Source: Lepidodermella squamata (Eukaryota > Animalia > Gastrotricha). Taken from it: a DNA stretch of 64,000 nucleotides. A program made the translations under genes and the position numbers. This document shows, in pieces, positions 9,001-44,222 of this stretch (position 1 is its first letter; each line of letters opens with the position of its first letter). Under the pieces are notes generated by a model. That model was not told the DNA's origin. It worked only from the letters and a program-made list of their open reading frames with translations, and did no database searches. The stretch covers positions 1,116,001 to 1,180,000 of the forward strand of contig JBLDXI010000054.1 in NCBI GenBank assembly GCA_047495785.1, given 5' to 3'.

Positions 9001-10027
9001 CAAAACGACGCTATGCCCCTGCATCGCCTTGCCGCGAAGTCGAGGATCCAAGAAATGACTGATCAGCAGTATCAACAAGCTGATTTCGAGGCTTGGAAGA
9101 AACAAATTGTTGCGATTTCTGTCGCGACTAGTGTTCTATGCAATGACACCGCGTTTGTTGCGGTTGACCCGGTTAGCAAGGTTCGAGTTGAGGTCAAGGT
9201 CGCGAAGAGCCGGCCACCTTTCGACCTTGCCGATTATCTCCTCGGGAGGTTAGACGCTCCTGCTACGGTTCATACGTCGAACGTTCATATTTCCTTCTAC
9301 TTATAGCTTCGACGGTTCACAGACGGAGAGATGGGGATACGGAATGGTACGTTAGCTTTTACTAAAAATCTTATGGACAGAAGTTAATTCAATTATGTTT
9401 AATTAGCACAGATCCCTGTGTGTCTTGACCCTGTATCGTATGTTCAGGATGTGAGTCTGTGATCAAAAAACGATACTTGCTATTATTCATGAAAGAAATC
9501 GGGGAAATTTACCAAAATTGTCCAGAAATGCGGGATATTTTCCGTAAAATTTCCTATCCACTGTTTTTATTGTATTTTTCAACCAAGATTTAGGATATAT
9601 ATTTGTTTCTGATTTTTAGGATCTTTGCGGTAGTAGTTTGCTCTGCGTTAATAGGAGTTTTCACGCTCCAGCTCCTCCGCCAGCTCCTGAAATCGCACCT
9701 ATGGATAAGTTGATCCGCTTGCAGAAGTTTAACGGCTCGTGGGCCATGAGCAACGAATTGGCTTCAATTGTCCAGCCTGCCAAAACACCGGACCAGGTTG
9801 AAATGCGCCGTGAAGCTACAGCGGCTATCAGCGGTAAAGTTTCGGATGAATACGCAATTGCTACGCTTATTGGTCTTGCTTTGCTGCGTAAAAAATTTGC
9901 ATCGAGCCGCGATGAATGGGAACTTATCGAACGAAAAGCTATGGCTTTCTTGAATTCAAACCTCGGAGAGCTTGCTGGGCAAATCGATTCATTTATCGAC
10001 GCGATCGCCCATGCTTTTTCGCTGTGA
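6051..10027 (+). CDS. VWA5A-like protein (VIT domain + von Willebrand A domain), multi-exon
   Basis: VIT motifs (PLKSVSV...ECQFVFPL...LGNLPPG), MIDAS DRSAS and VLTDGEV, ADLGGTEILKPL, C-terminal LIRLQKFNGSW...DEWELIERKA. Exons ~6051-7102, 8389-~9268, short middle exons, 9621-10027. Confidence 0.88.
7618..7802. mobile_element. hAT-like MITE in VWA5A-like intron 1
   Basis: Termini CAGAGCTG...CAGCTCTG; internal GGAAA(T)-rich repeats; imperfect flanking duplication (cttcgcgaac / cttcgaac). Confidence 0.55.
7889..8189. mobile_element. MITE with ~105-bp terminal inverted repeats (CATTGTG...CACAATG)
   Basis: Left arm cattgtgtttgaggttgtaagttg...gatcgtgcgatc is the near-perfect reverse complement of the right arm; flanks ttgcagtga / gagcagtga. 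Confidence 0.85.
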
Positions 10028-13340: not shown

Positions 13341-16106
13341 ATGGAGAAGCATATATTTTCTATTCTGATCATCCTTCCTGCAATTCCCAATGTTTGGATG
13401 AAAGTATTCGTGAACAGTCCCATGCCAAGCCGCATTTTATCATCGAGTTACAACGAAAGCGTCCGCGGGCTGAAGAAGGTAATATCGATACCCGCAACTA
13501 TCAACAACGGCGGACCTCTTCTCCCTATCGGATCAACTTGCACTGAGGGCATGCGTTTCGCGATCGACAGCATAAATTCCCGCACAGATTTCCTGCAGGG
13601 CTATGAATTAGCCATAGACCCTATCGACGATATGGTATATATAGTTACTGTCCGATTCTTTGAAAGAAGATAATTTCCTATTTTGTTAGTGCTCACGAGC
13701 TCTTGGAGTCAACAAGTTTTCAGGTGAAATGCGGAGAAGTGACGAAATCGCTGACAGGTTCCCAATTCATTTGGGCTCTTACTGCTCGGGAAACATTTAC
13801 ACTGGCCAATATCATCACCATTTCAACTTTTTAGGGGTAAATTCCACGTTAGCTGGTTTACTATATGTCATATTTAATTCCTCTTCTAGCTCACTTTAGT
13901 TGCTGCTGCGGATGAGGTTCACAAGTCTACATCACAGTACAGCGGCTATTTCCCCACCTTACCGCTTTTGGGAACCGGCCACTACGCTCTACCAAAGTTG
14001 TTCGACATGATGAATTGGCGAAAAATTGGCATCATATCTGAGAACTCAAATTACAACAACGAAGTAAGCCTCAAAAAATAATCTGAGAATTTGTATAACA
14101 ATCTCCCAGATTGAGACTAAACTCACAGCTGATTTGGAGAAACTCAGCCCTCCGGCTACGGTCGGTATATTCAGATTCCTATACATGTCTGGGGTTGCCC
14201 CGGAATCCAGCTGGATCGAAGGCCCAGCGCTTGAGTTGAAAGAATTCAATCCGCGAATCATCATAGTCAACGCTGTTCTCTCGGTTCGAGTAGCTTGTTG
14301 GCTTCACAGGCTCAAAATGTACGGTCCAAACTACGTCATCCTATCTATGGCCATAACATCTTTCGGCCCGGCTGATATACTTCGCTTCTCAGATTGGTGC
14401 TCTGAGGAAATGCTGAGGCAGGTCTTGGAGAGTTTCATCTACTTTGGATACGCCAATTCGATGAACATGGGCGATTTCGATTCGGTTGATTCATTGGGTA
14501 ATACGGGACGCCAGCTGGATAACGCTCTCCAGCGGGCTGTTGAAAGTCCCGAGAGTGATTCAAGATGGTGGCATTGGCGGTCTTACTGCTACGACAATGT
14601 CATGATAGCTGCTCATGTTTTAAATCAAACTGAATCTACCTTGAACAAACGTAAGTAACGCCCTATTCCCTTTTTGTTTAATCCCAAATTGTATACAGGT
14701 AACGAAACTCTGTCTGATTGGTTCACGTCAAAACGGAAATTTCAACAAAACGGCTCGCAGATATTCGAAACAATGAAGGAGTCGCTTTTCTCGACAAAAC
14801 TGATGACCAAAATGGGTTATGTCGAGTTCGATGAGACGACCAAGCGTAACACCAAGGGCAAAATGAATATCGGCTTCTTCCAAGTTCGAATCGATGAGAA
14901 AAACCGTTTGGCACCATGGGTTATCGCGACGTTTGATACTAGTAATGGAAAATTTGACGCTAAGCTTGAAGCTATGAAATGGCGGACTGCAAGTGGAGCT
15001 CCGCCTTCGGACAGGCTCAGAATTATCCAAATAAACGCGCCTTTGATAGCTACATCTGCTTATGGAGTTATCCTCTCGGCTGCAATTCTGCTCATGGCTT
15101 TCATTTTTATTGTCGGGTTCAGCCAAAGGAAGCAGGCCGATGCGCCGGATTTTGCTGTACTATGCGGGGACTTTTTTCTGTGTCTTCATGTCATAGTTCA
15201 ACCTTCTTCGGCTATCTCAAGCCTGGAAGTCGCATGTATGGCAGCCTACGCCTTCTTGTTCTATGGAATATTCTGGCAATTAGCAGGAATGCTGGGGAAG
15301 ATAGAAATCGCAAAAAGTAGACATTTAGCTGAAGCAAGAGCACGTTCCAGAGCTAATGAGCGCTCACCGCGGCCAGCAGACAGACGAAAGCACAACAAGG
15401 AATGTCCGCCCATCGACTACTCATCTTCGGGCAGGGTGACGCCCGCAATATTCGTCCTACTTTTCGCTGTGTTTTTCATCCTCATCTTGGCGTGGTTCTT
15501 CGTCGATCCAATGTCTGTGAAGATAGCATCTACAGGATACCATCAATCTGCCCACGATGAGAGTATCGCTTACGAATCAACATCACTGGTATGTTCAACT
15601 GGCGAGAGAATCTCCTCGAAGGTTTTTCTTAGCCTAATAACTGCGACACTCGCTGTAATGGCTCTGAGGGGCGGATACGTCGCCTACGTCATAAGAACGG
15701 TAATTGCCCAATTATCAACCCTTTCCCTGGCAACTAATTTTTTCCACTAAAACAGAGAACAGAAACAGTAATTGCTGAACTGGCAGTCAAGTGTATGTAT
15801 GGGAGCGTGGTTCTGTGGGTGGGCGGTGGCGTCGTAGCCGGTGCAATATTTGCCGATTCCGAGCAATCGAAGCGCATTTCTATTGCAATGACAATTTTCA
15901 CAAGTATTTCGCTGAATCTTGCGCTGCTTTTTGGCATGAAGTCGAGGGAGCAATGTCGATCGACTGTTGCTCCAAGTGGGGCATCTTTACATGACAGGGG
16001 AGCTCGTTCTCCAGCTCACAATCAACAATTTGGCGTTGCTGATATTTCGCGATTCGTTGAAGATAACGGCATGAAATCGCTTAGAAATCTAGCTCTAGAA
16101 CCGTAG
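13341..16106 (+). CDS. Class C GPCR, GABA-B-like, paralog A (about 6 exons)
   Basis: EGMRFAIDSINSRTDFLQGYELAIDPIDD, MMNWRKIGII, VACWLHRLKMYGPNYVIL, YCYDNV, then 7TM with ILAWFFVDPM; separated by ~45-55-nt GT-AG introns. Confidence 0.82.
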
Positions 16107-21172: not shown

Positions 21173-21645
21173 CTAATTAAGCGTGGGACTGCTGCATGAC
21201 TTGGGGCTCCAGCCCTGATGTTCGTAATCGAAATCACAAAATTTATGAACCTGTGTCCTCATATTCAGATACATAGCAACCTCCAAATATCGCAGCACGT
21301 GATCGCCCCAGCGTTTCTCGTACATCTGTAAAGAATCAACAGCTTCACGCTTGAAGGCTTGAATCCCGGGATGATCGCGAAACGTTGGGATGTGCAGTAT
21401 TTCAAAGTTATTGTAGAAAACTGGAAATTTGTAGCTCCGTTTCGCATCGGGCAGTCTCGAAAATTTTGGCAGCTGCAAGGTGAAAATTGAATTTCTTTCC
21501 TGCTTGGTAATGTAATTCTCAACGAAATCGACCAAGCCACTTGTGACATGTGGCGAATCCCTGTTCACCACTCTGGTACCATACAAGTATCTCTTCTCTT
21601 TCATGTAAGCAAAAATGTCGTAATTTATGGGTGAAGCTATATTCG
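21173..21645 (-). pseudogene. GT15 (KRE2/MNT1-like) alpha-1,2-mannosyltransferase, 3' half, separated by LTR insertion
   Basis: NIASPINYDIFAYMKEKRYLYG...FYNNFEI...MYEKRWGDHVLR...DFDYEH: GT15-type motifs (YDxF, FY/WxNFEI, RWGD). Confidence 0.85.
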
Positions 21646-22298
21646 TGTCACACCTATCTATTAGAACAGAGTTATATCAAACCAGTAGCTTGATCAACTC
21701 GAATAACAGATAGAGAATTAATTCTGGTATTTGATATTTTATTGCGACACTTGTTCGGTGACACAGGGCAGAAGTCTTTGGATGACTTCGTCGACAGTTA
21801 GTAGCACACGTAACTCTAGTGTCATAAACTAATCAAAGCTCGTGAGCTGTTAGCTTTGCTAGTTCTAGTGGTCTGCTAGTTAAGCTTGTTAGTTAGTTGA
21901 TACAGAATGAGAAACATGGAGTTTATATAGGCTCATGCTACTGCGTCATTGGAATATTGCCAAGATCCATCATAGTACTTTCTATAGATGATTCATATTT
22001 ATCAAGTCGAAGCTATGATGAGTCATAATTATTATGACGTATCGATTGCATCATGGAGATGAGTCATCATTTCTATTGCGTATTGATTGCGCATTATCTT
22101 TGAATCGATTGCTGATCGATTTCCTATTGCGTATTTCGAGATTGCTGATGCGTAGTTACGAATTATTGTTGCGTACGGAGGTGCGTCGTAACTCATTTCT
22201 GATGTTCGAGCGTTGGTGGCTTGAAACCGGTAGCTGGTATTGAAAATATGAATAAACCTTTTGAAACGTATTGGTGTTGAGTGTTTAATCCGATGACA
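21646..22298 (-). repeat. 3' LTR (653 bp)
   Basis: Direct repeat of 30224-30876 at offset 8578; preceded on the minus strand by a short purine-rich tract (cgcgggagg, 22299-22307). Confidence 0.97.
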
Positions 22299-22745
22299 CC
22301 TCCCGCGTTACTTTACATTTCGTCCCGAAATGATGGCGACTTTTCAAAACGCGTCGGTTGATTTTTGGCAAAAATTCCAGAATCCTGCGGCGAAAACTAA
22401 ATTTTATTTGGTAAAACAATTTTTAAAATATTTTTAAAATATTATTTTAGCATCAATAATTATTTATTTAGCTAAAATATATTTTTCCTTCACCTTTCTC
22501 AGGAGTTTTCGAGAAAAAGTTGCAGGTTTAAGTTAGTAGGTGAACGTGATTTTTCAGCGGTTTTGGGTGGTTTTTCACTCTTCAAGACTTTGTCCACTCA
22601 GGTTTCTTTATTAAAACGACCGTTTTACTTAGTTCTTTAGGGCTTTTACTAACAATTTTCGTATTTTGTTTATCTAAATCGTTTCTAGGTTTTAATGGGT
22701 GACATAGGGAAGTTCACGCAGTGTTTATCTTTTACGCTCTTCTTT

Positions 22746-23342
22746 CTACCACTTCGGTTCTTGCTGTTGATATGTTTCGGGTGACCAGACTGATACGCAT
22801 CCGGCCTTTGGCGGGAATTCATGCTGGATCCGGACCACTGTGTCCAAATTTATGTTGAATTTGCCATCTGTTACGTGCATGTTGAACACATGGGCTGGCT
22901 GTGTTTGCACATAGTGATTGTCCCTTACGGGTCCTGCTACCTCCTTCTCTTGGCCTGTTGTTACTGCAGTCGTACTTGCGCTCAGATTCGGCATAGTTTC
23001 GACCGCCAATTTTGGTACCAGGATCTTAGGTGAGCACCTCTGGGTCTCTTCCTGTGGTTGCTTGCTTAGACGATAGATCCCGTTGCTCGTGGCTGCTTCT
23101 CCAGCCAAAGTTCTTCGTAGCGCAATGGCTTCTTCTTCTTGCTGCTTTTCTTCTCGCGATATGTATTTCGATCTTAGGGGAATACTTTCGGCGTAGAGTT
23201 GATCATATGGAGCCGGTCTCTTTGTCCGGTCCATACGGACTCGTTCCTCCGGTGTGGCCTCTTGATACTCGCGAGCATAACGGTAACGCCGCGATTCCAT
23301 CTTGGATGGCGACAGTTCTTTCTTGGAGACTTTGGCAGCCAT
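22746..23342 (-). CDS. Retrotransposon accessory ORF5, 198 aa, charged, unknown function
   Basis: ATG-initiated, same strand as pol, inside the LTRs, flanked by AT-rich spacers. Confidence 0.55.
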   Translation of the reverse strand: MAAKVSKKELSPSKMESRRYRYAREYQEATPEERVRMDRTKRPAPYDQLYAESIPLRSKYISREEKQQEEEAIALRRTLAGEAATSNGIYRLSKQPQEETQRCSPKILVPKLAVETMPNLSASTTAVTTGQEKEVAGPVRDNHYVQTQPAHVFNMHVTDGKFNINLDTVVRIQHEFPPKAGCVSVWSPETYQQQEPKW

Positions 23343-23574
23343 TGATAATAATTTTTCAAAATTCTAAGATTATAGATTATATTAAGTTTAACAAGTTTTA
23401 AATTTTGCCTTTTCCTTTTATTGTTTCTAGGTTCTAGATTTGTAAAACAGTAAAGACTGAGCTTATAGTTTAATGAGTCGGCTTCTTGTGATGATTTGTC
23501 GGTGCTAGTATGGCTGTCATGGTTGGTTATCTATGGTCGAACATTGTGAAGTTCTTCTGTTGTGACGGGGCTGT

Positions 23575-23877
23575 TTATTCTTCCATCATGGGTGAACCAT
23601 TTGTCAACGTCTCCTCTGACGTTGCAGGCGTTGTGGTTGGCGAGATAGTATCTAATACGAGTAGTATCAGTTCGAACGAGGTCTCGAGGAAAATAAGGAT
23701 TGTGGGTACAATCCTTGTCCCTATGGGGCTGACCGGCCGACCATCGAAACCGACCGGGTTGAAGTGGTCAACCCTCGTCAGAATTTCCCCGAATGCAAAG
23801 TCGAGGTAAGCTCTGAGTTCGGGCACCGTCGTCGGTTGCCTGTACAGGGCCGCGGCGCGATCTTGCAGATGAGCCAT
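23575..23877 (-). CDS. Retrotransposon accessory ORF4, 100 aa, unknown function
   Basis: acaATGG start context, sense to pol, one hydrophobic segment. Confidence 0.45.
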   Translation of the reverse strand: MAHLQDRAAALYRQPTTVPELRAYLDFAFGEILTRVDHFNPVGFDGRPVSPIGTRIVPTILIFLETSFELILLVLDTISPTTTPATSEETLTNGSPMMEE

Positions 23878-24144
23878 TGTGAGTTTTGAAAATTAATTGT
23901 ATATTGAGGTAACAGAGTTCTAACAAGTTGAAGACATCAGTCATTAGGCCAGGCTTATTTATTTATTATGCCTTAGTTATTTTCTTGTCATGCCAGGGTA
24001 TGCGTATAATATCCTTTCGGTAGTTGACTAGTATTCTTTAACAAGGTATCAATGTAACAGACGCCTGTTAGCAATTTGCTTTTTGTTTTCCAGGGATACA
24101 ACTTTACTGATTGCCGTGGCTTTCGAGTCCTGGGTGAGCAGTTT

Positions 24145-24726
24145 TTACGGGTCTGCAGGAGTCTGTCGCTGTGTTGGTGTGATGACGGCGAGCAATCGTG
24201 GCGGTCCGCGCTGGCTGGGTTGTCCGCTAGGCTCCGTGCCGAAGAGGTCGAAGCAGCATCGGGCTACTTCTTCCCCTCCGAACGTTTCCCTTAATTGCGC
24301 GAGGACGGTCTGGTTTTGATACCAGACTTGAAGGCAAGCGATGATTTCCGGGCCGAATTGTTTGATCACGTCTGGGCGATGCAGAGCTTCGACCATTAAA
24401 TGGAAGTTGGCCTGATCTGCTAACGCCCGCCACCAGACCCAGACTTCGTCGGGCCGTCCTTCTTCCCAGCCGGGCTCCGGATACTGCTCGGGCAGGGACC
24501 GCTCCAGACTGGATGTAAATAGCCAGTCATTACACCACAGCCGAATGGGGTCGGTTATTGTATGGTCCACCGGCTTGAAATTATACCGGCCCTGCTGGCG
24601 CTGCTTCTGGCGCCAGCGGCACCCGTCGATCGTAAAGAAAGTCAGTATCAATCGCAGCGCCCGTTGGTTTCGCTCGAGATCGCTGCTTGCGCGATTGTCG
24701 TTTTGGTTGCCAGTGTTGACGTCCAT
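24145..24726 (-). CDS. Retrotransposon accessory ORF3, 193 aa, Trp-rich, unknown function
   Basis: accATGG start context; GC-rich coding-like block between AT-rich spacers. Confidence 0.6.
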   Translation of the reverse strand: MDVNTGNQNDNRASSDLERNQRALRLILTFFTIDGCRWRQKQRQQGRYNFKPVDHTITDPIRLWCNDWLFTSSLERSLPEQYPEPGWEEGRPDEVWVWWRALADQANFHLMVEALHRPDVIKQFGPEIIACLQVWYQNQTVLAQLRETFGGEEVARCCFDLFGTEPSGQPSQRGPPRLLAVITPTQRQTPADP

Positions 24727-24801
24727 GGTTGAGGTAATTCTTTATGCCTGAGCGTTAGTTTAACAATTAGTTGTTCGAATCTAGGATGCAATGTTAATTG
24801 G

Positions 24802-25023
24802 TTAATTAGTTATGCTTGGTGACAGTGTGTCCCATGGTACGCTGGGTGACAATGGCGCCGAATATTCTTCTAATTCGCCATCATCAGGCCAGTCGTCATG
24901 ATCGAAGTTAGTCTGGTTGTCAAATAAGTCGAAGAGCGACGTGAACGAGAAGTCAAGAATTTCGGGTATACAGTTGTGGCGATATTGATGATTGGTGACA
25001 AGCGGTACCTCATGTGGCGCCAT
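24802..25023 (-). CDS. Retrotransposon accessory ORF2, 73 aa, acidic
   Basis: ATG-initiated, sense to pol; Asp/Phe-rich. Confidence 0.4.
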   Translation of the reverse strand: MAPHEVPLVTNHQYRHNCIPEILDFSFTSLFDLFDNQTNFDHDDWPDDGELEEYSAPLSPSVPWDTLSPSITN

Positions 25024-25095
25024 GAAGCTTTACTAGGTACGTTATTCAAGTTTAATTTGTAGAGCTAGGGCTCACTTGCTGCTTACGCGCTTAGG

Positions 25096-25608
25096 CTAAG
25101 GCGCGTTTCTGCAAATGCAAGCAAGTTCACCGATGAGGCGGTAGTAGACGCAATGGTCTATTTCCAAGTCGATTTCATAAATGTCGGAACATTGAACTAT
25201 CAGCTCCTTATATAGCGCTACGCCGCATTTTTCAAACGTTTCGCAGCGTTGTTCCAGAACGGTCTTTTCGCAACGGCTTGTTACTATTTTTATCGGCTCG
25301 TGCCCTGGTATGCCGGTGGTATTTTTGTCGGTTAACACCTCGGCACAGGGTGCGGCCGCGCCTGTTGCGTTGAGCGCGTCGGTATTATTATCTGCGTGTT
25401 CATTAGCGACTGCGCACGGAGCCACTTGCGTTTCATTTATTGATGTGCGCGCGGGCTCGGCAGCTATCATAGCGGCGATCGGTATTTCTTGTTTTAGCGC
25501 TTCCAACCCGCTTACAGTTTTATAAATCAGGAACGCGGTCGTCGTGACCATCGCGATGAGCGCTAGCGCCTGCAGCACGTTCTTTCCTAAAGCGATGTAG
25601 TTGCACAT
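25096..25608 (-). CDS. Retrotransposon accessory ORF1, 170 aa, putative type II membrane glycoprotein
   Basis: N-terminal hydrophobic anchor (VLQALALIAMVTTTAFLIY), four N-x-T sequons (NET, NNT, NAT, NTT), Cys-rich C-terminus. Confidence 0.6.
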   Translation of the reverse strand: MCNYIALGKNVLQALALIAMVTTTAFLIYKTVSGLEALKQEIPIAAMIAAEPARTSINETQVAPCAVANEHADNNTDALNATGAAAPCAEVLTDKNTTGIPGHEPIKIVTSRCEKTVLEQRCETFEKCGVALYKELIVQCSDIYEIDLEIDHCVYYRLIGELACICRNAP

Positions 25609-25800
25609 TGTCCAATCGTGTTGATGAATACGGTCTCTGTAATTTTATCCTTACGTAGTTTATGCGCTCCGGCCTTCGAGCTGTCAATTCCTTATTCAAT
25701 CAAAAAGAAAGGTTGCTCGTAAGCGCTCTTCCCGGGAAATTGTAAGACGTCTTGCTAGCGAGTTTTCTTTTTGTTTGAATATTTCTCCCTCCTTTTCCGG

Positions 25801-27405
25801 CTACTTGTCTGATTTCTGGTACATCGATTCGTTTATGCGCGGTTCTTTGTAACATTTTCCAAGTTTAGCCGCTCTTGCCGGTAACTCTCTGTGTATTATG
25901 TTGCTGCTTCCACTCGTTTTACACGTGATCCCTGTTTCTGCAGAGCTGGGTTCTGAGGCCGTTATGGTGTTTTGTGGTGTGATGGTGGGCCCAGATGCTA
26001 TTTCTGGCAGTGGTGGTGGCGTGATGTTGGGCAGGTTTCTGCTTGCTGCCTCACTGTATGTTATGTATTGCGTAGTCTGTATTGGCTCCATTCGCACTAT
26101 CGGTTGGTGCGCTAACAGCCTCTGTAGCTCTTCGGCGCTGACTGTGCGCGCTTGCTTTGACGTGTTATTGTTTGGTAGACTAGGCGCCGATGCCTCAGTG
26201 TTCCATTGTTCTATGTCATACTCGTCTGCGGGTAACAGTTGCAATGTGCGGCTTTTCTTTTGTAATGTGGTCTGCGTTGTGCTGCGTGAGTTGCGCTGTT
26301 GCTGTTGCGCTATCTCGAATTCGGTCATTTTATCTAGTTGAGCCGGGACATCGCCATAGTATTCTTTTAAGCGGTTGCGATGTACTACTTTTTCCTTACC
26401 GCTACCGTTAAACAGTCGTATTGCGTAGTTGAGCGCTCCGTAGCGCGCTACAACCGTGTACGGGCCGCGCCATGCGCAATGGAATTTCGCAGACTGCCCT
26501 CTTTTTACCACTGGGTTATGCAGCCACACCAGCTCGCCTTCTTGGAAGGGCTCGCAGTTTTTGCTTCCTTGATCGTATGTACGCTTTTGGCGTGCGCGCG
26601 CCTGCGCTAGTTTTTGCCGCGTTTCTTTGAATGCGGTGCGTAAGCGTGTGTAGACTTTTTGTGCGTACTCACTACGGTTTTGGATTTCATGACTGAATGC
26701 TGGCTCTTGAATGGCTACGTCTATCGGTAGCTTTGCATGCCGGCCAGTCATTAGATAGAATGGTGCGTAAGATGTTGAGTCGTGCGTGCTGGTGTTATAC
26801 GCAAATAGCGCTGATTTAAGATAGACATCCCAATCGAATTGCGTAGCAGGAGTCAGATATTTAGCTATGATATCCTGTACTGTTTTGTTCATGCGCTCGC
26901 AAAACCCATTGCTCATAGCGTGGTATGGTGTGGTGTGTACGTGTTTAGTACCCAGGATTGCGCAGATATCGTTTATTAGCTTGGCCTCGAAGTTTCGACC
27001 ATTGTCGTTTAACAAAATTTGGCTGCGCCCCCACCTAAAAACAAAGTCGAGCAGACAATCAGCCACTGATTCGGCTGTAATATTTTTAAGCGGATATCCC
27101 TCAATATATTTTGTGAAGTGGTCGCCTATTAGCAGAATGTAATTGTTGCCTTTCTTTGTTGTAGGTTGGATTGGACCCATTACGTCCCATGCTACGAGTG
27201 CCATTGGCTCCGTTGTGTCAATTGGTTGCAGGGGAGCGACCGGGTGCGCGTTTGGCGCTTTTCGTTGTTGGCAGTCATGGCATTTCCGGACGTAGTCAGC
27301 AATTGTTTCTTCCATCTTTGGCCAGTAAAATCGTTGTCGAACGCGATCCAGGGTACGATCGAGTCCCAAGTGTCCTGCATTCACATCGTTGTGCAAGCTT
27401 TTCAA
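25801..27405 (-). CDS. Integrase (HHCC, DDE core, GPY/F motif) with long low-complexity tail; out of frame with RT
   Basis: HNDVNAGH...CHDC; WDVMGP, LLNDNG, GFCERMN; WRGPYTV. Confidence 0.92.
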   Translation of the reverse strand: MKSLHNDVNAGHLGLDRTLDRVRQRFYWPKMEETIADYVRKCHDCQQRKAPNAHPVAPLQPIDTTEPMALVAWDVMGPIQPTTKKGNNYILLIGDHFTKYIEGYPLKNITAESVADCLLDFVFRWGRSQILLNDNGRNFEAKLINDICAILGTKHVHTTPYHAMSNGFCERMNKTVQDIIAKYLTPATQFDWDVYLKSALFAYNTSTHDSTSYAPFYLMTGRHAKLPIDVAIQEPAFSHEIQNRSEYAQKVYTRLRTAFKETRQKLAQARARQKRTYDQGSKNCEPFQEGELVWLHNPVVKRGQSAKFHCAWRGPYTVVARYGALNYAIRLFNGSGKEKVVHRNRLKEYYGDVPAQLDKMTEFEIAQQQQRNSRSTTQTTLQKKSRTLQLLPADEYDIEQWNTEASAPSLPNNNTSKQARTVSAEELQRLLAHQPIVRMEPIQTTQYITYSEAASRNLPNITPPPLPEIASGPTITPQNTITASEPSSAETGITCKTSGSSNIIHRELPARAAKLGKCYKEPRINESMYQKSDK

Positions 27406-29101
27406 TACTCTGTCTTGTAATGCCGCGTAATGTCGTAATGTCGCGTGGTGCTGGGTAGTCGCGGACTACTTTGACCTTCCCTTCGTCCGGTCTCACCCCT
27501 TGTGCAGTCACGATGTGGCCAAGGTATGGTACTTCTTGCTGTGCGAAATGACATTTAGACGCTTTTATTTTCAGTCCTGCGCGTCTTAGTCGATCGAATA
27601 CCCGTCGGATGCTGTCGAGATGTTCTTCGAACGTGCGGCTGAATATCAAGATGTCGTCCAGATATACCAAACATCGTTCGAAGAGTAGTCCGTTTAGGAC
27701 GTATCCCATTAGTCTTTGGAACGTCGCTGGCGCGTTACTGATTCCGAATAGGAGCACGCAAAATTCGAACAAACCAAATGGACTTGAGAATGCCGTTTTC
27801 GGTTTTGATTCCTCCGTGAGTCCGACTTGCCAGTACCCGGATGCAAGGTCGATGCCTGTGAACCAGGCTGCTCCCGACAGGGCGTCGAGTGTATCATCGA
27901 TCCGGGGCAGCGGGAATGCGTCTTTTTCCGTCATGGAATTTAATTTCCGAAAATCGATGCAAAAGCGTACGGAACCATCTTTCTTGGGCACGAGTACGAT
28001 CGGGCTGGCCCATCCGCTTGTGCTTGGTCGGACGACTCCGGCAGCTAGCATTTCGTCCAGTTCCTTTCGGATGATTTCGCGTTCTTTGAACGTCGTTCTT
28101 CGCGGTAGCTGCTTTACCGGTCTTCCCGTGGTCCGAATTTCGTGCTTTACTACATTGCATTTGCCGAGATCCCGCTTTCCTTTCGAGAAGATGTCGTTGT
28201 ACTCGATGAGCAAGGCCTTCAACTGCTCCCTCTGCTTGTCCGTTAACTGTGGTGAGCTTAAGTCGATACCTTCTGGCACAGTGGCTTGTTCTGCTTTCTT
28301 TTGCACTCCTGTTCCTACCGAGTTGATGATCGGAGCTGTCTTGTTGGGGATTTCGGACTCGGCGACCTGTTCTAGGTAAGCTATCTTTTGATCTTTGTGT
28401 AGGACCAGCGGGCATTTTGACACGTTTAGGATGGGCACTATTATTTTCCCTTCCTTTGAGCGGACCAGTGCGTGACCTATTAGGTATGCGGGCTGTTCTC
28501 CTTCTAGCTTGATAGGGTTTGTAATTCCTACCCTACCGTTCGGTATGTCCGCGTGTCCTTCCACTAGTGCTGCTGTTTCTGGGGCTATTTGTGTTGCTTT
28601 TATGAGCCTTATGGGTTCTAGGGCTTCTGGTATGACCACTTGGTTAACTTGTATGGTCTGGTTAAGTTCCTTCAGCGGTATTTTATTTCCGTCGAGGCTG
28701 ATTTCTCTTTTAGACCAGTTGACCTTGGTGGTGCATTTTTCTAGGAAATCTGCGCCCAAGAGCCCTTCTGTGCATAAATTATTTACAAACAGAAAGTTGT
28801 GCTTGTAGGAATGGGGTCCCAGTTGAAACAGAATTTCTGCTTCTCCTGCCAGGTTGAGGGGCTTGCCGTCGGGGCCTACTGCCGTTGCCTTCTTTGTCAG
28901 AGTTCCCTTGGGTAGGTACTTAGACTTTAGACAACTTTTAGCGGCTCCCGTGTCGACTAGAACGTTTATTTTATTATTGTTTACTGTAAATTCTACGGCT
29001 AGTCCCTTAACACTGTTTTTACCCACTTGAGCTATTAATGCGGGGTTTGGCTTTTGGGACGGCGTTCCCCCGTTTGCTACACCGGCCCTTCCTAGTTTCC
29101 C
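27296..29101 (-). CDS. pol: Pol: aspartic protease + reverse transcriptase, truncated before RNase H
   Basis: LVDTGA protease; SPIVLVPKKDGSVRFCIDFRKLN, YLDDILIFS, YLGH. The frame is open upstream to the GGGAAAC slippery site. Confidence 0.93.
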   Translation of the reverse strand, partial: GKLGRAGVANGGTPSQKPNPALIAQVGKNSVKGLAVEFTVNNNKINVLVDTGAAKSCLKSKYLPKGTLTKKATAVGPDGKPLNLAGEAEILFQLGPHSYKHNFLFVNNLCTEGLLGADFLEKCTTKVNWSKREISLDGNKIPLKELNQTIQVNQVVIPEALEPIRLIKATQIAPETAALVEGHADIPNGRVGITNPIKLEGEQPAYLIGHALVRSKEGKIIVPILNVSKCPLVLHKDQKIAYLEQVAESEIPNKTAPIINSVGTGVQKKAEQATVPEGIDLSSPQLTDKQREQLKALLIEYNDIFSKGKRDLGKCNVVKHEIRTTGRPVKQLPRRTTFKEREIIRKELDEMLAAGVVRPSTSGWASPIVLVPKKDGSVRFCIDFRKLNSMTEKDAFPLPRIDDTLDALSGAAWFTGIDLASGYWQVGLTEESKPKTAFSSPFGLFEFCVLLFGISNAPATFQRLMGYVLNGLLFERCLVYLDDILIFSRTFEEHLDSIRRVFDRLRRAGLKIKASKCHFAQQEVPYLGHIVTAQGVRPDEGKVKVVRDYPAPRDITTLRGITRQSIEKLAQRCECRTLGTRSYPGSRSTTILLAKDGRNNC

Positions 29102-30078
29102 CAGTCCTGCTCGGCGGGTTTATTGAGCTCGGATTCACTTTTTGTTGGGCGACGACAGTTTCGTTTGATGTGGCCCTCCTTTCCGCAGTTATAGCATTTA
29201 ACGGGTCGTCTTCTCTGGTTATTGAACCGTCCCGGTCCGTTGCTATTGCCACGGAAAGAGTTATTGTTGCGCCGAAATGGTCGATCCTCCGGCTCCCCAA
29301 CTCTTAGCTTTTCCATCTTGTCTGCTAGTTGGTCTAACTTTTCGTCCTTTTTCTTTTGCAGCTCTATTTGCTGTGTCAACAGACCGATTAACAATGGTGT
29401 CGTGGAGTCTGTGATATTGCCGATAACTGGTGAAGTGCCGATGGCGCCAAGTTTAAGCGCTCGTTCTTCTCGCTCGGCCAATTCAACGGCTTTTTCGAGC
29501 GTAGCTGGGTCGCCGCTTGCTTTGAAGACGGCGATTCGAAGGTCTGGTCGTAGACCTGCCATGAAGCGAGCAAGCAGTTTTGCGTCTTGGATGGCTTTTG
29601 TTGCCTCCGGGTCGGCTAACTTCATCAGCTTCCTGAGAGCTGCAAGGAAATCTCGGACTGTCTCGCTGGGTTGCTGAGTTTTGTTTTGAAATCGAACCTC
29701 AGCGACAGCTTTGTCGACTTCCAAATGGGCTCCTTTGGCCAGTATTTCTTTTGCCGCCTTTAAGCTGTAGACCGAATCGCGGTTTTCGGCTTCCCAAATT
29801 TCGAGCAGTTTAGCCGGCAGATATGCAGGCAAGACTTTCAAAACCATGCGAATTTTGTCCCTTGCTGCTGTTTGGGCTGTAGCTGCTGCTGTTCGTGTTG
29901 TTTCGTCTGGTATCGCTGTGGCTGATACGTCGCGAGTTGCTGCGGTGTCGTCTACTCCGCATGCTATGGCAATAGCGCTGAAATGCTGCCAGCTTTCCTC
30001 GAATTCTTCTGGTGATTCGCTCGAGATTTTCGGCAAAGCGTGAAGACATCTTTGTAATTCTAGAGTGGTGTGTGCCAT
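29092..30078 (-). CDS. gag: Gag with CCHC zinc knuckle, 328 aa
   Basis: QQPSETVRDFLAALRKL capsid-like motif; CYNCGKEGHIKRNC. Confidence 0.93.
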   Translation of the reverse strand: MAHTTLELQRCLHALPKISSESPEEFEESWQHFSAIAIACGVDDTAATRDVSATAIPDETTRTAAATAQTAARDKIRMVLKVLPAYLPAKLLEIWEAENRDSVYSLKAAKEILAKGAHLEVDKAVAEVRFQNKTQQPSETVRDFLAALRKLMKLADPEATKAIQDAKLLARFMAGLRPDLRIAVFKASGDPATLEKAVELAEREERALKLGAIGTSPVIGNITDSTTPLLIGLLTQQIELQKKKDEKLDQLADKMEKLRVGEPEDRPFRRNNNSFRGNSNGPGRFNNQRRRPVKCYNCGKEGHIKRNCRRPTKSESELNKPAEQDWGN

Positions 30079-30205
30079 CGATTACCATGTGCTGGTTACT
30101 TGTTTGTAGCGAATATTGTAGTAAAGAATCAATGCTTGTTGGGCGATAAATGTCAATTCTAGCGTGTTGCGCCGTAATTGTTTTGTGATTGGGGTGGTTT
30201 CGCTA

Positions 30206-30218
30206 ACCGCTGCCACCA
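30206..30218 (-). other. Primer-binding site, complementary to tRNA-Leu 3' end
   Basis: TGGTGGCAGCGGT 5 nt inside the 5' LTR; matches the ...ACCGCTGCCACCA end of eukaryotic tRNA-Leu (recalled, not searched). Confidence 0.75.
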
Positions 30219-30223
30219 GAATA

Positions 30224-30876
30224 TGTCACACCTATCTATTAGAACAGAGTTATATCAAACCAGTAGCTTGATCAACTCGAATAACAGATAGAGAATTAAT
30301 TCTGGTATTTGATATTTTATTGCGACACTTGTTCGGTGACACAGGGCAGAAGTCTTTGGATGACTTCGTCGACAGTTAGTAGCACACGTAACTCTAGTGT
30401 CATAAACTAATCAAAGCTCGTGAGCTGTTAGCTTTGCTAGTTCTAGTGGTCTGCTAGTTAAGCTTGTTAGTTAGTTGATACAGAATGAGAAACATGGAGT
30501 TTATATAGGCTCATGCTACTGCGTCATTGGAATATTGCCAAGATCCATCATAGTACTTTCTATAGATGATTCATATTTATCAAGTCGAAGCTATGATGAG
30601 TCATAATTATTATGACGTATCGATTGCATCATGGAGATGAGTCATCATTTCTATTGCGTATTGATTGCGCATTATCTTTGAATCGATTGCTGATCGATTT
30701 CCTATTGCGTATTTCGAGATTGCTGATGCGTAGTTACGAATTATTGTTGCGTACGGAGGTGCGTCGTAACTCATTTCTGATGTTCGAGCGTTGGTGGCTT
30801 GAAACCGGTAGCTGGTATTGAAAATATGAATAAACCTTTTGAAACGTATTGGTGTTGAGTGTTTAATCCGATGACA
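30224..30876 (-). repeat. 5' LTR (653 bp)
   Basis: Direct repeat of 21646-22298; contains minus-strand TATATAAA and AATAAA. Confidence 0.97.
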
Positions 30877-31400
30877 TTCGAGTCGGTATCCAGTCGTAGG
30901 TAGTATTCAACATCCTGCATAACAGGGTGGTGTAGTACTCGATGGTACCAGAAATCGCACATATGCCGGTAGCCTATCGTCCATGGTTTGCCAGTTTCCA
31001 ATTTGTAAATTTCGAGAAATTTCTCAGGAATCTCGAATTTCACCTCGACCAATTCGATAAGTTCCGATTCGTTGGATTGTAGCCACGTTTTTGTAAGATT
31101 TTCAAACATTTGCCGATCCACCGGCTTCTCATGAAAAATTATTATTGGATACCGGAATCTCCTGTTAAAATTAGCGAATAGCAGTCTTAACGAGTGCGAT
31201 AGCTGATCATAACGAGAGGGAGTTGCCAGGTATGCAATTACATTGCGTAGCTCGGCATTTTGTTGAGTGGTGTTGATAACGCGCGCCATCGAAGAATTCC
31301 ATTGCTTTGCGGGTACGCGAAGGGCGAAGCATACACTCGCACAAAAAAATAAAATAGAAACGCATATCTTGCAGACTAACCCTCTTTCCGGGTCGACCAT
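30877..31400 (-). pseudogene. GT15 (KRE2/MNT1-like) alpha-1,2-mannosyltransferase, 5' half
   Basis: Type II signal-anchor, then FNRRFRYPIIIFHE and GYRHMCDFW...HHPVMQDVEYYLRLDTDS. Joins the 3' half in frame (330 aa) once the element and one TSD copy are removed. Confidence 0.87.
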
Positions 31401-32649
31401 TACAAAATGATACTATCATAGAGGAATTTCGAAAATAAGACAATTCTTTTAGTTATTATTAGATTTTTGAGCATTGTTTTAAAGAGAGGACGCTAATAAA
31501 GATGTTTGCGTTACGCATGACATCAAAACTGCACCTGTTGATTCTTTTCTAATGTGTTCACATCGAGCATAGAATGCGAAAAGGATTGTTTCCGAGGAAA
31601 GCAACAACATCGCGGTCTGGTGGACCAGACCCCGACGAGGCATTACTCGTGTTCCACGACGCGCTCCGGTCGACCAGGATGCGATGGGCCTACAATCTCT
31701 CTCTTCAAACGCCTCTTCCTGAGCTCGTGACTGTCGACCGAGTCATGGTGGGTTCCAAAGCGAATGAACAATAAACGCGCGAGCACGGTATCCCGTGTCA
31801 AATCAAATCATTGATACCGAAAAATCATAAGAAATCATGACTCATCAGGATTTTCACCAAACTGGGGGCTTTGAAACTTCAAAATTAGCGCGAATTTGAA
31901 ACTAATGTTCCTCTCCAAAATAAATTTTATCGGAAATGGCTGAAAAATCCTAGTTTAGCAGCATTCGAGATTTCAAGTTTTTCGATTGAATCCCGCATCG
32001 TAAATCAAAATCAATCAAATGAAAAGGTCTTCCCGCGTAAATCAATCGTTATAAATCTGAATCACCAAAAATCAAATCTAATCAAATCCAAAGCACTGAT
32101 GAAAATGTCATGTTAATCGATTGCACCACTGATTTCGCATGAATAACAGTCAAAAATAATTCGATTTGGTATGTACCATCAGAAAAAAAATGTCAGGCAA
32201 AACTGGAAGCAGTTTCTACAATTTTATCACCGAAAGGTGTCTTTCGCCTGCAGTATAGCACACAGCAGGGCTGTTATTAAATTCACTTTGAGCAGTCGGT
32301 AGGCGTGGTGTGACGGTCTGTTTTGTTTGCTAAGTGAGAAAGTTGAAGCTATACTGTGTGCGTCCTGTCGTAGAATTAAAAATAAAAGCAAGTTCAAGCA
32401 TTGCGAAATGAGGACAAATTTTTTTTGAACTAGGCGCTGGATAAAATTGTTGTGTTCCCTATTCGAATATTTCAAAATGTAAGATCTCGAGACCAATATT
32501 GGCATTGCCTAGTTGACTCCCATCGTCATCAGCATACTCGCATCAGCAGCATTTTCTTCCATTTTGGGATTCATTTTAACCATGATGGTTTGAATAGCTT
32601 TTTTTTACTGAATTTTCTCACTTTCCTACTTCGGCGGCAACGACAGCGG

Positions 32650-41471: not shown

Positions 41472-44222
41472 ATGACGCGAGCTATTATCTTTTTCTGGCT
41501 TCAATTCTGGGTAATCATGCAAGTCGCATTCGTGGGATCGTCGAAACTTCCTGCAAATAGCCCAATGCCTAGTCGCATTTTCGCTTCGAGCTTTAACAAG
41601 AGTGATCCGAGAGGAAGAATATTGTCTTTGCCTGCAACGATAAACTACGGAGGTCCATTGCTTCCTCTTGGTCCAACTTGCACAGAAGGAATGCGCTTTG
41701 CCATTGACAGCATTAAGAAGACAGCAAATTTTCTGCCTAATTACGAAATAGCTATCGACCCATTGGACGATATGGTAGGTTGACTTAGCGACCATTGTAA
41801 AAACCTACAATTTATTGCAAATTTCAGTGCTCCAGGGCTGGTGGGGTCAACAAATTTTCTAGCGAAATGCGACGAAACGACGAAATCGCTGATAGGTTTC
41901 CTATTCATTTAGGATCTTACTGTTCGGGCAATATATACACAGGCCAGTATCACCATCACTTCAACTTTTTAGGGGTAAGAGATGAAACAATAACTAATTA
42001 ATGATCGATTGGTTGAAACTTGCCTTCGATAGCTAACGATGGTTGCATCGAACGACGAAATTCACAAGTTTGTTTCACAATACCAAGGATACTTTCCGAG
42101 CCTCCCTCTTCTCGGTACTGCTCACTATGCTCTTCCTCAATTTTTCGACATGATGAATTGGAGGAAGATCGGAATAATATCTGAAAACGCAAAATACAAT
42201 ACTGATGTAAGATTGCTTGCAATGATAAATTGTAATTAAAAATTCCAAATATGGATCATAGATTGAAACCAAACTCGCCATCGATTTGGAGAAGCTAAAC
42301 CCACCGGTAAAGATCGGCATCTTCAGATTCCTTTATATGTCTGGAGTTGCTCCCGAATCTAGCTGGATCGAAGGTCCAGCACTAGAGTTGAAGGAATTCA
42401 ATCCGAGAATCATCATAGTCAACGCTGTGCTTTCAGTTCGAGTGGCTTGTTGGCTTCACAGGCTTAAAATGTTCGGCCCAAACTACGTCATCCTATCAAT
42501 GACGCTGCAATCCTTCGCCCCTTCTGAGTTACTGCGTTTCTCCGATTGGTGCTCAGAGGAAATGCTTAAGCAAGTCTTGGAGAGTTTCATCTTCTTTGGT
42601 TACGCGAATTCGATGAGTATGGGCGATTTCGATTCGGTTGATTCATTAGGCAACACTGGGCGCCAGCTAGACAAAGCCCTTCAGACCGCCGTTGAAAGTC
42701 CTGAGAGTGATTCAAGATGGTGGCATTGGCGGTCTTACTGCTACGACAATGTCATGATAGCGGCTCATGTTTTGAATCAAACTGAATCTATATTGAACAC
42801 ACGTAATTCTCTTGCGAACTAATATTTGCCCTTAATTTTCATTCTTCTATACAGGTAACGAAACTCTGTCCGATTGGTTTACGTCAAAACCGAAATTCCA
42901 GCAAAACGGATCGCAGATATTTGAAACAATGAAAGAGTCATTATTCTCAACAAAACTGATGACCAAAATGGGTTACGTTGAGTTCGATCAGACCACTAAG
43001 CGTAACAGCAGGGGCAAAATGAATATCGGTTTCTTCCAAGTTCAAATCGATGAACGAAACCGTTTAGCACCCTGGGTTATTGCTACGTATGATACGAAAA
43101 CTGGAAAGTTTCTCGCAATACCAGGGGCTATGAAATGGCGAACAGCTGACGGACAAGCGCCAACAGACAGTCTGCGGGTAGTGCAAATCAACTCTCCTCT
43201 GATCAACACTGCAGCCTACGCAACGTTAGCGGTGATTTCCGCATCCATAGTTATCATTAATATAATTCTAATTTCGCTTCTATGTTTACGCCGAGACCGC
43301 TCATTCAACTATTTGATCCTAATTGGAAATATTTTCCTCCAAATTTACATCTTGATCCGACCACCTCTGATACTTTCTTGGCTCGCTGTATCGTGCATGA
43401 TAGCTTACAGTGGTTTGTTTATCGGGGTTCTCTCCCAATTCCTCGCATTTGCGGTTAAACTGGAAATTTCCAATATTAGCCGTTTTCGTCGCACGCAGCG
43501 TAGTTCCCGTTTTCAAAGCACCAGTTCCGGAGTTTTCGAGCGGATGAAATCTGCGAGTTCGGAATCTTTAGCTGCACTTGGCTGTTTAGGCATTTTGGTG
43601 GTCGTATTGGGCCTGATTGCAGCGTGGTTTGCCAGCGATCCTTTGGTGATCGATACAGTAATTTCCGAAGTAAATATTGCTTCAAATGATGGTAGCGTCG
43701 GATACCAATACTTGAGCAACCGCTGTATTTTAGGCGAGGAGCTGCAAACCTACATTCTGATGGGTCTGATCATCGTTATTATTAGTACTCTGGTACTACG
43801 AGGCGGATACTTAGCATATCTCTTCCGATCGGTGCGTTTTATTGTCTCAAGTTTAAGTTTGATAGTGACACTTTAAATTTCAGAGCAACAGCGCTGGTGG
43901 ATCAGACCTTTTAGCAACAGGAAAATGCTTATACGGAAGCGCAATCCTGTGGGTTTGCGGTGCTGTTGTGGCTGCAGCGATGTTCGACGACGCCGCTGAC
44001 AGGAAACATCTGGCGATATGCGTCACCGTAATCGGAAGTTGCCTGCTTAACCTGAATATGATATTTGCTCCGAAGCTGCGATCGCTGCTGCTGGAGAGCC
44101 TAAGAACTGAAAGGATGACCGATGTTAAGGTTCGAACACATCCATCAAAGTCGGTTGTGCGGGGTGGCAGGACATCTCAGTTTGTTGAGGAGCGCAGTAG
44201 TAGGGATATCGCTCATTCTTGA
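41472..44222 (+). CDS. Class C GPCR, GABA-B-like, paralog B
   Basis: Same exon structure as 13341-16106; near-identical flytrap domain; 7TM with IAAWFASDPL and MIFAPKL. Confidence 0.82.

Follow-up and report, generated by a model that had tools for sequence, protein, structure and literature searches.

A GT15-type glycosyltransferase gene split by an apparently recent LTR retrotransposon insertion in a metazoan-looking contig

Introduction

Glycosyltransferases of CAZy family GT15 are regarded as Golgi mannosyltransferases of fungi and protists. The closest described members are Kre2p/Mnt1p, Ktr4p and CmsA/Ktr4 (PDB 1S4N, 5A07 and 7BOO), which belong to Pfam family PF01793, share a GT-A fold and are held by a type II membrane anchor. 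The active site of Kre2p, as Lobsanov and co-workers reportedly described it in 2004, contains Y220, the metal ligands E247 and H388, and D361. We found no report in the literature of GT15 in animals; the published account of Cgm1 concerns GT139, a different family.

Carbohydrate-active enzyme genes acquired laterally by small invertebrates (bdelloid rotifers, mites, nematodes and tardigrades) offer a second comparison. Like these, the gene described here is intronless, belongs to a family otherwise non-animal, has a host-like composition and lies among host genes; unlike them, it has no demonstrable donor clade. We interpret it as a resident host gene of GT15 type that was taken up long ago from a non-animal eukaryote and was recently split by a retrotransposon, and we give this joint account a probability of roughly 0.6.

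Structure of the split gene

The gene was found in two pieces on the minus strand of the window, the whole 64-kb stretch of DNA analysed. As shown by translation, positions 31400 to 30879 encode M...YYLRLDTDS, the 174 codons of the N half, and positions 21643 to 21176 encode the 156 codons of the C half (NIASPINYDIF...), followed by a stop codon at 21175-21173. By coordinate arithmetic, removal of the intervening element with one copy of its target-site duplication left 993 nt in a single frame, that is 330 codons plus the stop. The insertion falls between codons 174 and 175 of this intronless ORF, and the first two bases of codon 175 are 30878-30877. A stop sits 4 codons upstream of the ATG (open frame 30774-31412), and AATAAA-like signals lie about 60 nt 3' of the stop codon. 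All features are collected in Table 1.

Table 1. Positions of the split gene and of the inserted element in the window.
Feature	Position	Strand	Content and basis
GT15 N half, codons 1-174	30879..31400	-	short cytoplasmic tail, signal-anchor, GYRHMC, YYLRLDTDS; translation, PF01793, alignment
Target-site duplication TTCG (+ strand), next to 5' LTR	30877-30880		
5' LTR, 653 bp, TG...CA ends	30224-30876	-	LTR comparison
Internal region of Ty3/gypsy-type element	22299..30223	-	Pfam domains, junction reading
PBS-like TGGTGGCAGCGG	starts 30218	-	
gag	30078-29092	-	Pfam Retrotrans_gag, zf-CCHC
Protease and reverse transcriptase	29026-27296	-	Pfam RVP, RVT_1
Integrase	27405-25801	-	Pfam Integrase_H2C2, rve, Integrase_p58_C
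Three ORFs after integrase, without family match	25608-25096, 24726-24145, 23342-22746	-	
Purine-rich tract GCGGGAGG	22306-22299	-	
3' LTR, 653 bp, identical to 5' LTR at 653/653 positions	21646-22298	-	LTR comparison
Target-site duplication TTCG (+ strand), next to 3' LTR	21642-21645		
GT15 C half, codons 175-330	21173..21645	-	INYD, FYNNFEI, RWGD, Y-E-H, C-terminal Cys; translation, PF01793, PDB matches

An intronless ORF of 330 aa, restored on removal of the element, had been proposed in a preliminary description of this DNA together with a set of KRE2/MNT1 motifs. The two halves bear out both, and GYRHMC, YYLRLDTDS, VFYNNFEIL and KRWGD are present in them. Aligned with 26 full-length relatives, the halves join directly, neither lacking nor duplicating a residue (e.g. 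against Euglena, YYLRLDTDSFLLAPIKYDLF). With 88% conservation or more as the threshold, these relatives have 28 conserved columns, and the gene keeps the consensus residue in every one, which indicates that it was intact until the insertion. The splitting of the gene by an LTR retrotransposon is confirmed far beyond chance.

Reading through from the N half adds 35 codons encoded by the LTR before a stop is reached (ORF 30771-31400, 209 aa). The expected product is a truncated protein of 209 residues, and the haplotype in the window is therefore a null allele of the GT15 gene. If the active-site comparison below is right, the insertion would separate the nucleotide- and metal-binding half of the enzyme from the half with the acceptor site and the His. 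A paralogue, which the preliminary description had proposed to look for, was not found in the 64-kb window by tblastn with both halves.

Genomic context

The GT15 gene has a GC content of 0.44 and a GC3 of 0.48-0.51. Like its codon usage, these values lie in the range shown by the genes around it; the codon usage of the transposon differs. No compositional break was seen in the window outside the element. The neighbours include an nrf-6-type gene, a CTL-type choline transporter gene, a VIT-VWA gene and an ANF-receptor gene. The first combines an NRF domain (48.8 bits) with Acyl_transf_3, and to our knowledge nrf-6-type genes and the NRF domain occur only in animals. The CTL gene scores 61.6 bits against human CTL1 and 30.3 bits against yeast Pns1. 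Judged from these few domain families, the host contig looks metazoan. Of the earlier statement that the gene sits among metazoan genes, it holds that the gene is embedded in host-like DNA.

We regard it as very improbable that the GT15 pieces are contamination or a product of chimeric assembly, or that the contig is not of animal origin. The exact 4-bp duplication, the matched LTR pair and the in-frame, gap-free rejoining are the signature of a real insertion, the composition is continuous with the flanks, and the nrf-6-type gene and the other neighbours listed above are carried on the same contig. Some results speak in favour of an artefact. The 769-residue ANF-receptor ORF found no relative in the word search at E <= 1e-5, exact look-ups returned nothing on record for either a 322-residue window ORF or the gag of the element, and many long window ORFs have no family match. 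Rfam and tRNA scans of the window gave no match.

Family membership, predicted fold and active site

The Pfam cut-off for PF01793 (Glyco_transf_15; profile length 325) is 25 bits. Each half of the gene passes it separately, the N half with 34.7 bits (E 1.6e-8, profile 44-182) and the C half with 44.5 bits (E 1.7e-11, profile 188-324), and the two are collinear on the profile. By this measure the gene is a genuine member of the GT15 family, as had been stated from the motifs. Among proteins of solved structure the C half matched Ktr4p (E 4.6e-10), Kre2p (E 2.8e-7) and CmsA.

The fold was approached through the nearest full-length relative, the metagenomic protein P0036. Its AlphaFold model (pLDDT 88.4) matched Ktr4p, Kre2p and CmsA with E values of 6e-20 to 1e-17 and TM scores of 0.64-0.68, and the next GT-A families with only about 1e-7. 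With this model as proxy, the window protein is predicted to have a GT-A fold superposable on Kre2p and Ktr4p. On inspection, the N-terminus is short and charged and leads into about 20 hydrophobic residues, the putative signal-anchor LVCKICVSILFFCASVCFAL. This stretch aligns with its equivalent in the relatives and points to the type II topology of Golgi enzymes.

Alignment to Kre2p (phmmer against 1S4N, with residue numbering set by the chain offset of 1S4N) placed the Tyr of GYRHMC at Y220, the first Asp of DTD at E247, a conservative change that keeps an acidic residue there, the Asp of RWGD at D361 and the His of Y-E-H at H388. The equivalents of these residues are invariant within the subfamily. 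The motif around the metal-binding Glu differs. In the canonical KRE2/MNT1-KTR enzymes it is YYWR-V/L-EP-D/N, read as WRVEPD in Kre2p and as WRLEPN in Ktr4p; the window protein has YYLRLDTDS, and all members of its subfamily keep R-x-D-x-D-S. The protein belongs to a non-canonical GT15 subfamily in which DTDS replaces the EPD or EPN of yeast. Unlike the solved enzymes, to which the P0036 model is about 20-22% identical and the window halves score 13-43 bits, it is short (about 330 residues) and has hardly any stem.

The intact enzyme is probably a type II, Golgi-type, retaining glycosyltransferase of GT-A fold, from a divergent GT15 subfamily with members of about 330 residues. By analogy with Kre2p, it would bind GDP-mannose through Mn2+, with the first Asp of DTD and the His of Y-E-H as metal ligands. 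The Tyr of GYRHMC and the Asp of RWGD would lie at the reaction centre, where a retaining reaction would pass mannose on to a glycan acceptor in the lumen. The comparison itself gives the fold, by proxy of P0036, and the conserved residues; from these we infer which sugar is donated, in what linkage and to which acceptor. GDP-mannose and an alpha-1,2 linkage are extrapolations, because we found no enzyme of the subfamily with a characterised activity in the literature. With DTDS, the metal might be coordinated in another geometry, or the enzyme might use another donor.

Relatives and origin

An exhaustive search gave 492 matches, the best with 43% identity and 123 bits and none above 50% identity. 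At least 150 cluster representatives scored 51-123 bits, and the N and C halves ranked the same proteins at the top. The named relatives come from euglenids, Naegleria, Rozella, an aphelid, a nucleariid, Mucoromycota and Basidiomycota, with a separate bacterial clade. On these matches the subfamily appears patchy in eukaryotes (euglenids, Naegleria, early-diverging and some higher fungi, a nucleariid), with the bacterial sister group standing apart. The short GT15-like proteins of the named eukaryotes, and those of metagenomic eukaryotes (P0036, P0037, P0038, P0047 and others), are of the same length class as the window protein. They match it at 30-43% identity and have the 28 conserved columns in common with it, among them RLDTDS, NNFE, RWGD, Y-x-H and the C-terminal Cys. 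None is more than 43% identical to it, and the window copy alone was seen interrupted by a transposon.

The preliminary description had taken the gene for a fungal KRE2/MNT1-type alpha-1,2-mannosyltransferase that had moved from a fungus to an animal and supported mannan-type glycosylation there. The family is PF01793, the solved homologues are all fungal, and the relatives include fungi and their allies (Rozella, Rhizomucor, Amoeboaphelidium and Basidiomycota). However, Kre2p and Ktr4p are distant: the C half matches them at 34-43 bits and the N half at about 13 bits, far below the 123 bits of the best match and below at least 150 representatives, and they carry the EPD-type motif in place of DTDS. 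The other sampled clades are likewise non-canonical; P0055, for one, scores 48 bits against Ktr4p. Proteins of euglenids and Naegleria are at least as close as those of fungi. Placing the window protein with the Basidiomycota-type clade was rejected (AU p = 0.012), and in the careful tree the window rows lie outside the clade that holds Rozella, Rhizomucor and the aphelid. Since the nearest relatives are not yeast-type enzymes, a fungal origin is unsupported, and we consider this transfer improbable. The conclusion that mannan-type glycosylation is implied went too far, because the copy is disrupted, the window has no paralogue and no member of the subfamily has a known activity. With the gene disrupted here, nothing can be concluded from it about glycosylation at present.

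Most proteins matched in the first word search were 250-310 residues long. Two were encoded in bacterial polysaccharide gene clusters and one on a phage-like contig, which first suggested a bacterial donor. Such an origin, from GT15-like genes of polysaccharide clusters and possibly by way of a virus, became less likely after the exhaustive search and the trees. Constraining the window rows to group with the bacterial ones lowers the likelihood by 11.1 lnL units, a placement that the AU test does not reject (p = 0.104). Against it, the bacterial rows form a clade of their own (SH-aLRT 98 in the quick tree, 99/92 in the careful tree), bacterial proteins score below the eukaryotic relatives on both halves, and the window protein has the N-terminal anchor and the C-terminal Cys region of the eukaryote type. 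We judge the probability of this origin to be very small.

In all trees the N and C halves were entered as separate rows. Both joined P0036 and P0037, with SH-aLRT 97 in the quick tree and 67/90 in the careful tree, where support is only moderate because each half was placed as its own row. These two nearest proteins, at 34-43% identity, are from metagenome contigs that also carry a fused CAD gene, an EB-module protein (44 bits), DPP8/9-N and C19orf12, with gaps of about 40-50 bp between exons. The eIF2-gamma of the same organism scores 439 bits against human and 384 bits against yeast. On these few domain families, P0036 and P0037 are probably two paralogues of another small invertebrate. In tblastx the GT15 gene was all that the window and the metagenome loci have in common, so there is no synteny between them.

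It is possible that the subfamily is an ancient eukaryotic one that was inherited vertically by animals, lost in most of them including the model species, and kept in a few small invertebrates. It is scattered over Discoba and Holomycota, and GT15 genes have also been counted in cryptomonads (PMC6260743). The nearest relatives are probably invertebrate, the composition is fully host-like, and no clade of the trees nested the window protein with support as that of a donor; its position is within the eukaryote-type clade. Many independent losses across Metazoa would nevertheless be required. The GT15 gene has no introns, either in the window or in the metagenome contigs; its neighbours have short ones. 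Relationships within the eukaryote clade also depart from the species tree, Rozella grouping for example with Rhabdomonas and Naegleria, which suggests that the subfamily moves laterally. No animal is named among the roughly 60 relatives with readable source names, out of several hundred, so named animal homologues may have been missed. We consider vertical inheritance unlikely; with many losses, it would account for the observed pattern as well.

The preliminary description gave GT15 as absent from standard animal models. The readable names include no animal, but the two nearest proteins lie on invertebrate-looking contigs. A vertically inherited metazoan clade, which had been named as the outcome that would speak against a transfer, is therefore possible. 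Lateral acquisition is plausible, and so is patchy retention. The most likely origin would be an old transfer from a non-animal eukaryote to the ancestor of a small-invertebrate lineage, followed by amelioration.

If an invertebrate does carry a resident GT15 gene, and a second probable one its relatives, this would add to the patchy or lateral carbohydrate-active enzymes of small animals and hint at a glycan that has yet to be explored. In practical terms the finding carries limited weight, as the window copy is broken, no donor can be named and the chemistry of the subfamily is extrapolated. A wider picture is tentative and rather doubtful as a whole: a small-invertebrate lineage might have a functional Golgi GT15-type family (the window gene and two paralogues in a second animal) from a protist-like donor, making a mannose-containing epitope new to Metazoa, and in the window an active retrotransposon would only just have disabled one allele.

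The inserted element

The insertion is a Ty3/gypsy-type LTR retrotransposon of 9,231 bp (21646-30876), on the minus strand and thus in the same orientation as the GT15 gene. It resembles Ty3/gypsy elements (Metaviridae) in its TG..CA LTRs, 4-bp duplication, PBS-like and polypurine-like tracts and order of gag, protease, reverse transcriptase and integrase, which the Pfam matches give as gag, RVP, RVT_1 and integrase. Unlike them, it shows no RNase H stretch at the expected place between the reverse transcriptase and the zinc finger of the integrase, as read at the junction; its frame shifts near 27400, between reverse transcriptase and integrase, and it carries three extra ORFs. Since the RNase H part is absent and the frame changes, the element appears to be non-autonomous.

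The LTRs are without difference over 653 bp and the coding sequence is otherwise undamaged, which indicates that the insertion is very recent. The locus is a clean and datable case of gene inactivation by a retrotransposon, and the element responsible would still be mobile though seemingly without an RNase H of its own.

Structure and identity of the split GT15 gene

The preliminary description had reported an intronless GT15 ORF of 330 residues split by a retrotransposon, an observation that was accurate and well described: subtraction of the element and one copy of its target duplication left, by base counting, 993 nt in a single frame. A stop codon was located 4 codons upstream of the ATG at 31400. 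The two halves were used as separate queries in all searches and as two separate rows in the trees, which lowered resolution. Each half alone passed the gathering score of PF01793 in Pfam, and the two matches were collinear (positions 44-182 for the N half and 188-324 of 325 for the C half). The C half matched the structurally solved fungal enzymes Ktr4p (E 4.6e-10), Kre2p/Mnt1p (E 2.8e-7) and Aspergillus CmsA; matches of the N half to the same three enzymes were weak.

The active site of Kre2p reportedly includes Tyr220, Glu247, Asp361 and His388. In the alignment these positions corresponded to the Tyr of GYRHMC, the first Asp of DTD, the Asp of RWGD and the His of Y-E-H, respectively. When aligned with 26 full-length relatives, the halves met without gap or overlap, and the consensus residue was present at 28 of the 28 columns that were at least 88% conserved. 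The AlphaFold model of P0036, the nearest full-length relative (pLDDT 88.4), matched Ktr4p, Kre2p and CmsA with E values of 6e-20 to 1e-17 and TM scores of 0.64-0.68, against about 1e-7 at best for the next GT-A families. Based on the Pfam, active-site, alignment, conserved-column and model evidence, the gene is a genuine member of the GT15 family and was free of defects prior to the insertion. A GDP-mannose donor, an alpha-1,2 linkage and Mn2+ are inferred for it from conserved residues and fold only. At the N-terminus, a short charged tail precedes a hydrophobic segment some 20 residues long, a predicted type II anchor as in Golgi transferases.

Features of the window and of the loci carrying bacterial or phage-type GT15-like genes (L001, L002, L004)
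Feature	Location	Strand	Remarks
Ricin-type beta-trefoil lectin ORF	138-593	+	36 bits; left window edge
ANF-receptor ORF	977-3283		Family match
VIT-VWA gene	5982-9303		Family match
GT15 C half	21643 to 21176	-	156 codons, starting NIASPINYDIF, then stop (translation)
LTR retrotransposon, whole element	21646-30876	-	LTR pair and target duplication
LTRs	21646-22298 and 30224-30876	-	653 bp each, identical at all positions; TG start, CA end
Three ORFs between integrase and 3' LTR	25096-25608, 24145-24726, 22746-23342	-	170-198 residues; no Pfam match
GT15 N half	31400 to 30879	-	174 codons from ATG, ending YYLRLDTDS (translation)
CTL-type choline transporter	47404-49524		Human CTL1 61.6 bits, yeast Pns1 30.3 bits
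NRF-domain gene, then Acyl_transf_3	NRF 61181-61597		48.8 bits
Ankyrin gene	In window		Neighbour of GT15 gene
GT15-like genes, bacterial/phage type	L001 8001-8933; L002 209-1090, 7804-8784; L004 2377-3153		258-326 residues

Relatives of the GT15 protein

When the N half was used in a word search, only 10 weak matches with identity of 37% or less were obtained. Two of these belong to gene clusters for bacterial polysaccharides, and a third is carried by a phage-like contig. GT15-like genes in such surroundings indicate that PF01793 is not restricted to eukaryotes. Those in the polysaccharide clusters adjoin GT11, GT4, methyltransferase, epimerase and UDP-glucose dehydrogenase genes.

Because the claim of a transferred gene depends on the absence of animal relatives, an exhaustive search was run with the C half (E <= 1e-3). 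It returned 492 matches, none of which was more than 50% identical; the best had 43% identity and 123 bits. In local comparison the same proteins were top-ranked by both halves. Named relatives were found in euglenids (Euglena gracilis, Euglena longa and Rhabdomonas costata), Naegleria (N. fowleri and N. lovaniensis), Rozella allomycis, Amoeboaphelidium protococcarum, nucleariid Nk52, Rhizomucor pusillus and the Basidiomycota Hydnum, Fomitiporia and Mycena. No animal name was present among the readable source names of the relatives. GT15 genes have also been counted in cryptomonads in a CAZyme table (PMC6260743).

The canonical yeast enzymes scored 34-43 bits, compared with 51-123 bits for 150 representatives among the matches listed, and the subfamily of the window gene has R-x-D-x-D-S where Kre2p has R-V-E-P-D. 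Given this distance and the different motif, the earlier label of KRE2/MNT1 type is inaccurate. By sequence, the gene belongs to a GT15 subfamily, non-canonical and patchy across eukaryotes, and not to the yeast type.

Phylogeny and origin

In a first tree of 126 non-redundant domains and the 2 window rows, both halves independently grouped with P0036 and P0037, the nearest relatives from metagenome contigs (SH-aLRT 97), and 46 bacterial-type rows formed a separate clade (98). Nine proteins of 1000-1500 residues with two separate query-matching stretches (P0053, P0092, P0102, P0120, P0133, P0144, P0164, P0165 and P0168) were placed in the bacterial-type clade. A more careful tree of 69 rows again separated the bacterial rows (99/92) and placed the window rows within the eukaryote-type clade (95/86), united with P0036 and P0037 at only 67/90. 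There the window rows were located outside the Basidiomycota-type clade (100/100), outside the clade of Rozella, Naegleria, Rhabdomonas, Rhizomucor, the aphelid and the nucleariid, and outside the euglenid-containing group.

AU tests were applied to two groupings chosen after the tree was seen. Union of the window rows with the Basidiomycota-type clade was rejected (p = 0.012), and union with the bacterial rows was not rejected (p = 0.104). Owing to these tests and the placement in the careful tree, the fungal donor proposed in the preliminary description is not favoured. We prefer a history in which an invertebrate lineage acquired the gene laterally, long ago, from a eukaryote other than an animal. 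That an ancient eukaryotic gene was simply retained, without any lateral transfer, is a less likely but plausible alternative.

P0036 and P0037 are two loci of one ENA metagenome sample, lying on different scaffolds (ERZ23486764 scaffold_2121 and scaffold_993), each called as a single ORF (363 residues in P0037), with near-identical copies in two more assemblies. Their contigs had a GC content of 38-39% and inter-exon gaps of about 40-50 bp. They carried a fused GATase-CPSase-DHOase-ATCase (CAD) gene, an EB-module protein (44 bits, cut-off 24), a DPP8/9 N-terminal domain, C19orf12, and an eIF2-gamma with a higher score against the human protein (439 bits) than against the yeast one (384 bits). 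Judged from these gene families, the single organism behind the two paralogues is probably a small invertebrate. No synteny was found between the window and the two loci. If the organism carrying the two paralogues is an invertebrate, the window gene, P0036 and P0037 make up a small animal GT15 group, 34-43% identical. Such a group, if real, is exactly what the preliminary description had named as refuting a recent transfer. It would still fit an earlier acquisition of the gene by a common ancestor.

Genomic context

The GC content (0.44) and GC3 (0.48-0.51) of the GT15 halves, together with their codon usage, were within the spread of neighbouring genes; the codon usage of the transposon was outside it. 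Open frames in the window are long, with a spacing that suggests introns of roughly 50 bp. The NRF and Acyl_transf_3 domains point to a gene of nrf-6 type. To our knowledge, nrf-6-type genes are found only in animals. Long single-exon ORFs of 315-769 residues with weak or no family match were seen at 977-3283, 3323-4414, 14674-15747, 42929-43873 and 45501-46466. A word search found no relatives of the ANF-receptor ORF. The genome seems to represent a lineage that is poorly sampled or evolves fast.

The retrotransposon insertion

The element is flanked on both sides by a 4-bp direct duplication, TTCG. Its internal ORF domains in Pfam were ordered Retrotrans_gag and zf-CCHC; RVP and RVT_1; Integrase_H2C2, rve and Integrase_p58_C, an arrangement that would assign it to Ty3/gypsy. 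It was inserted in the same orientation as the GT15 gene between codons 174 and 175, directly past the DTDS motif, and thus parts the half that binds nucleotide and metal from the one with RWGD and the His. The read-through product has 209 residues, the last 35 of them LTR-encoded, and this haplotype is a null allele. Since the copy is inactivated, it allows no certain statement about present glycosylation, and the mannan-type glycosylation earlier read from it does not follow.

The insertion must be very young, as the LTRs show 0 differences in 653 bp and both coding halves are undamaged. The RT thumb region passes directly into the integrase N-terminus, the frame changes near 27400, and between RT and the integrase zinc finger (27296-27405) the expected RNase H stretch was missing. 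The missing stretch and the frame change at this junction make the element appear non-autonomous. That its LTRs are identical although it lacks the RNase H stretch suggests recent mobilisation helped by another copy; no further copies or solo LTRs were found within the window. The three ORFs following the integrase, the first of which contains a hydrophobic segment, may be what is left of an env-like or accessory region. Between 22001 and 30000, GC was 0.49, above the flanks, and the AT skew of the + strand was -0.22 to -0.35, so that the coding strand of the element is A-rich, unlike the flanks.
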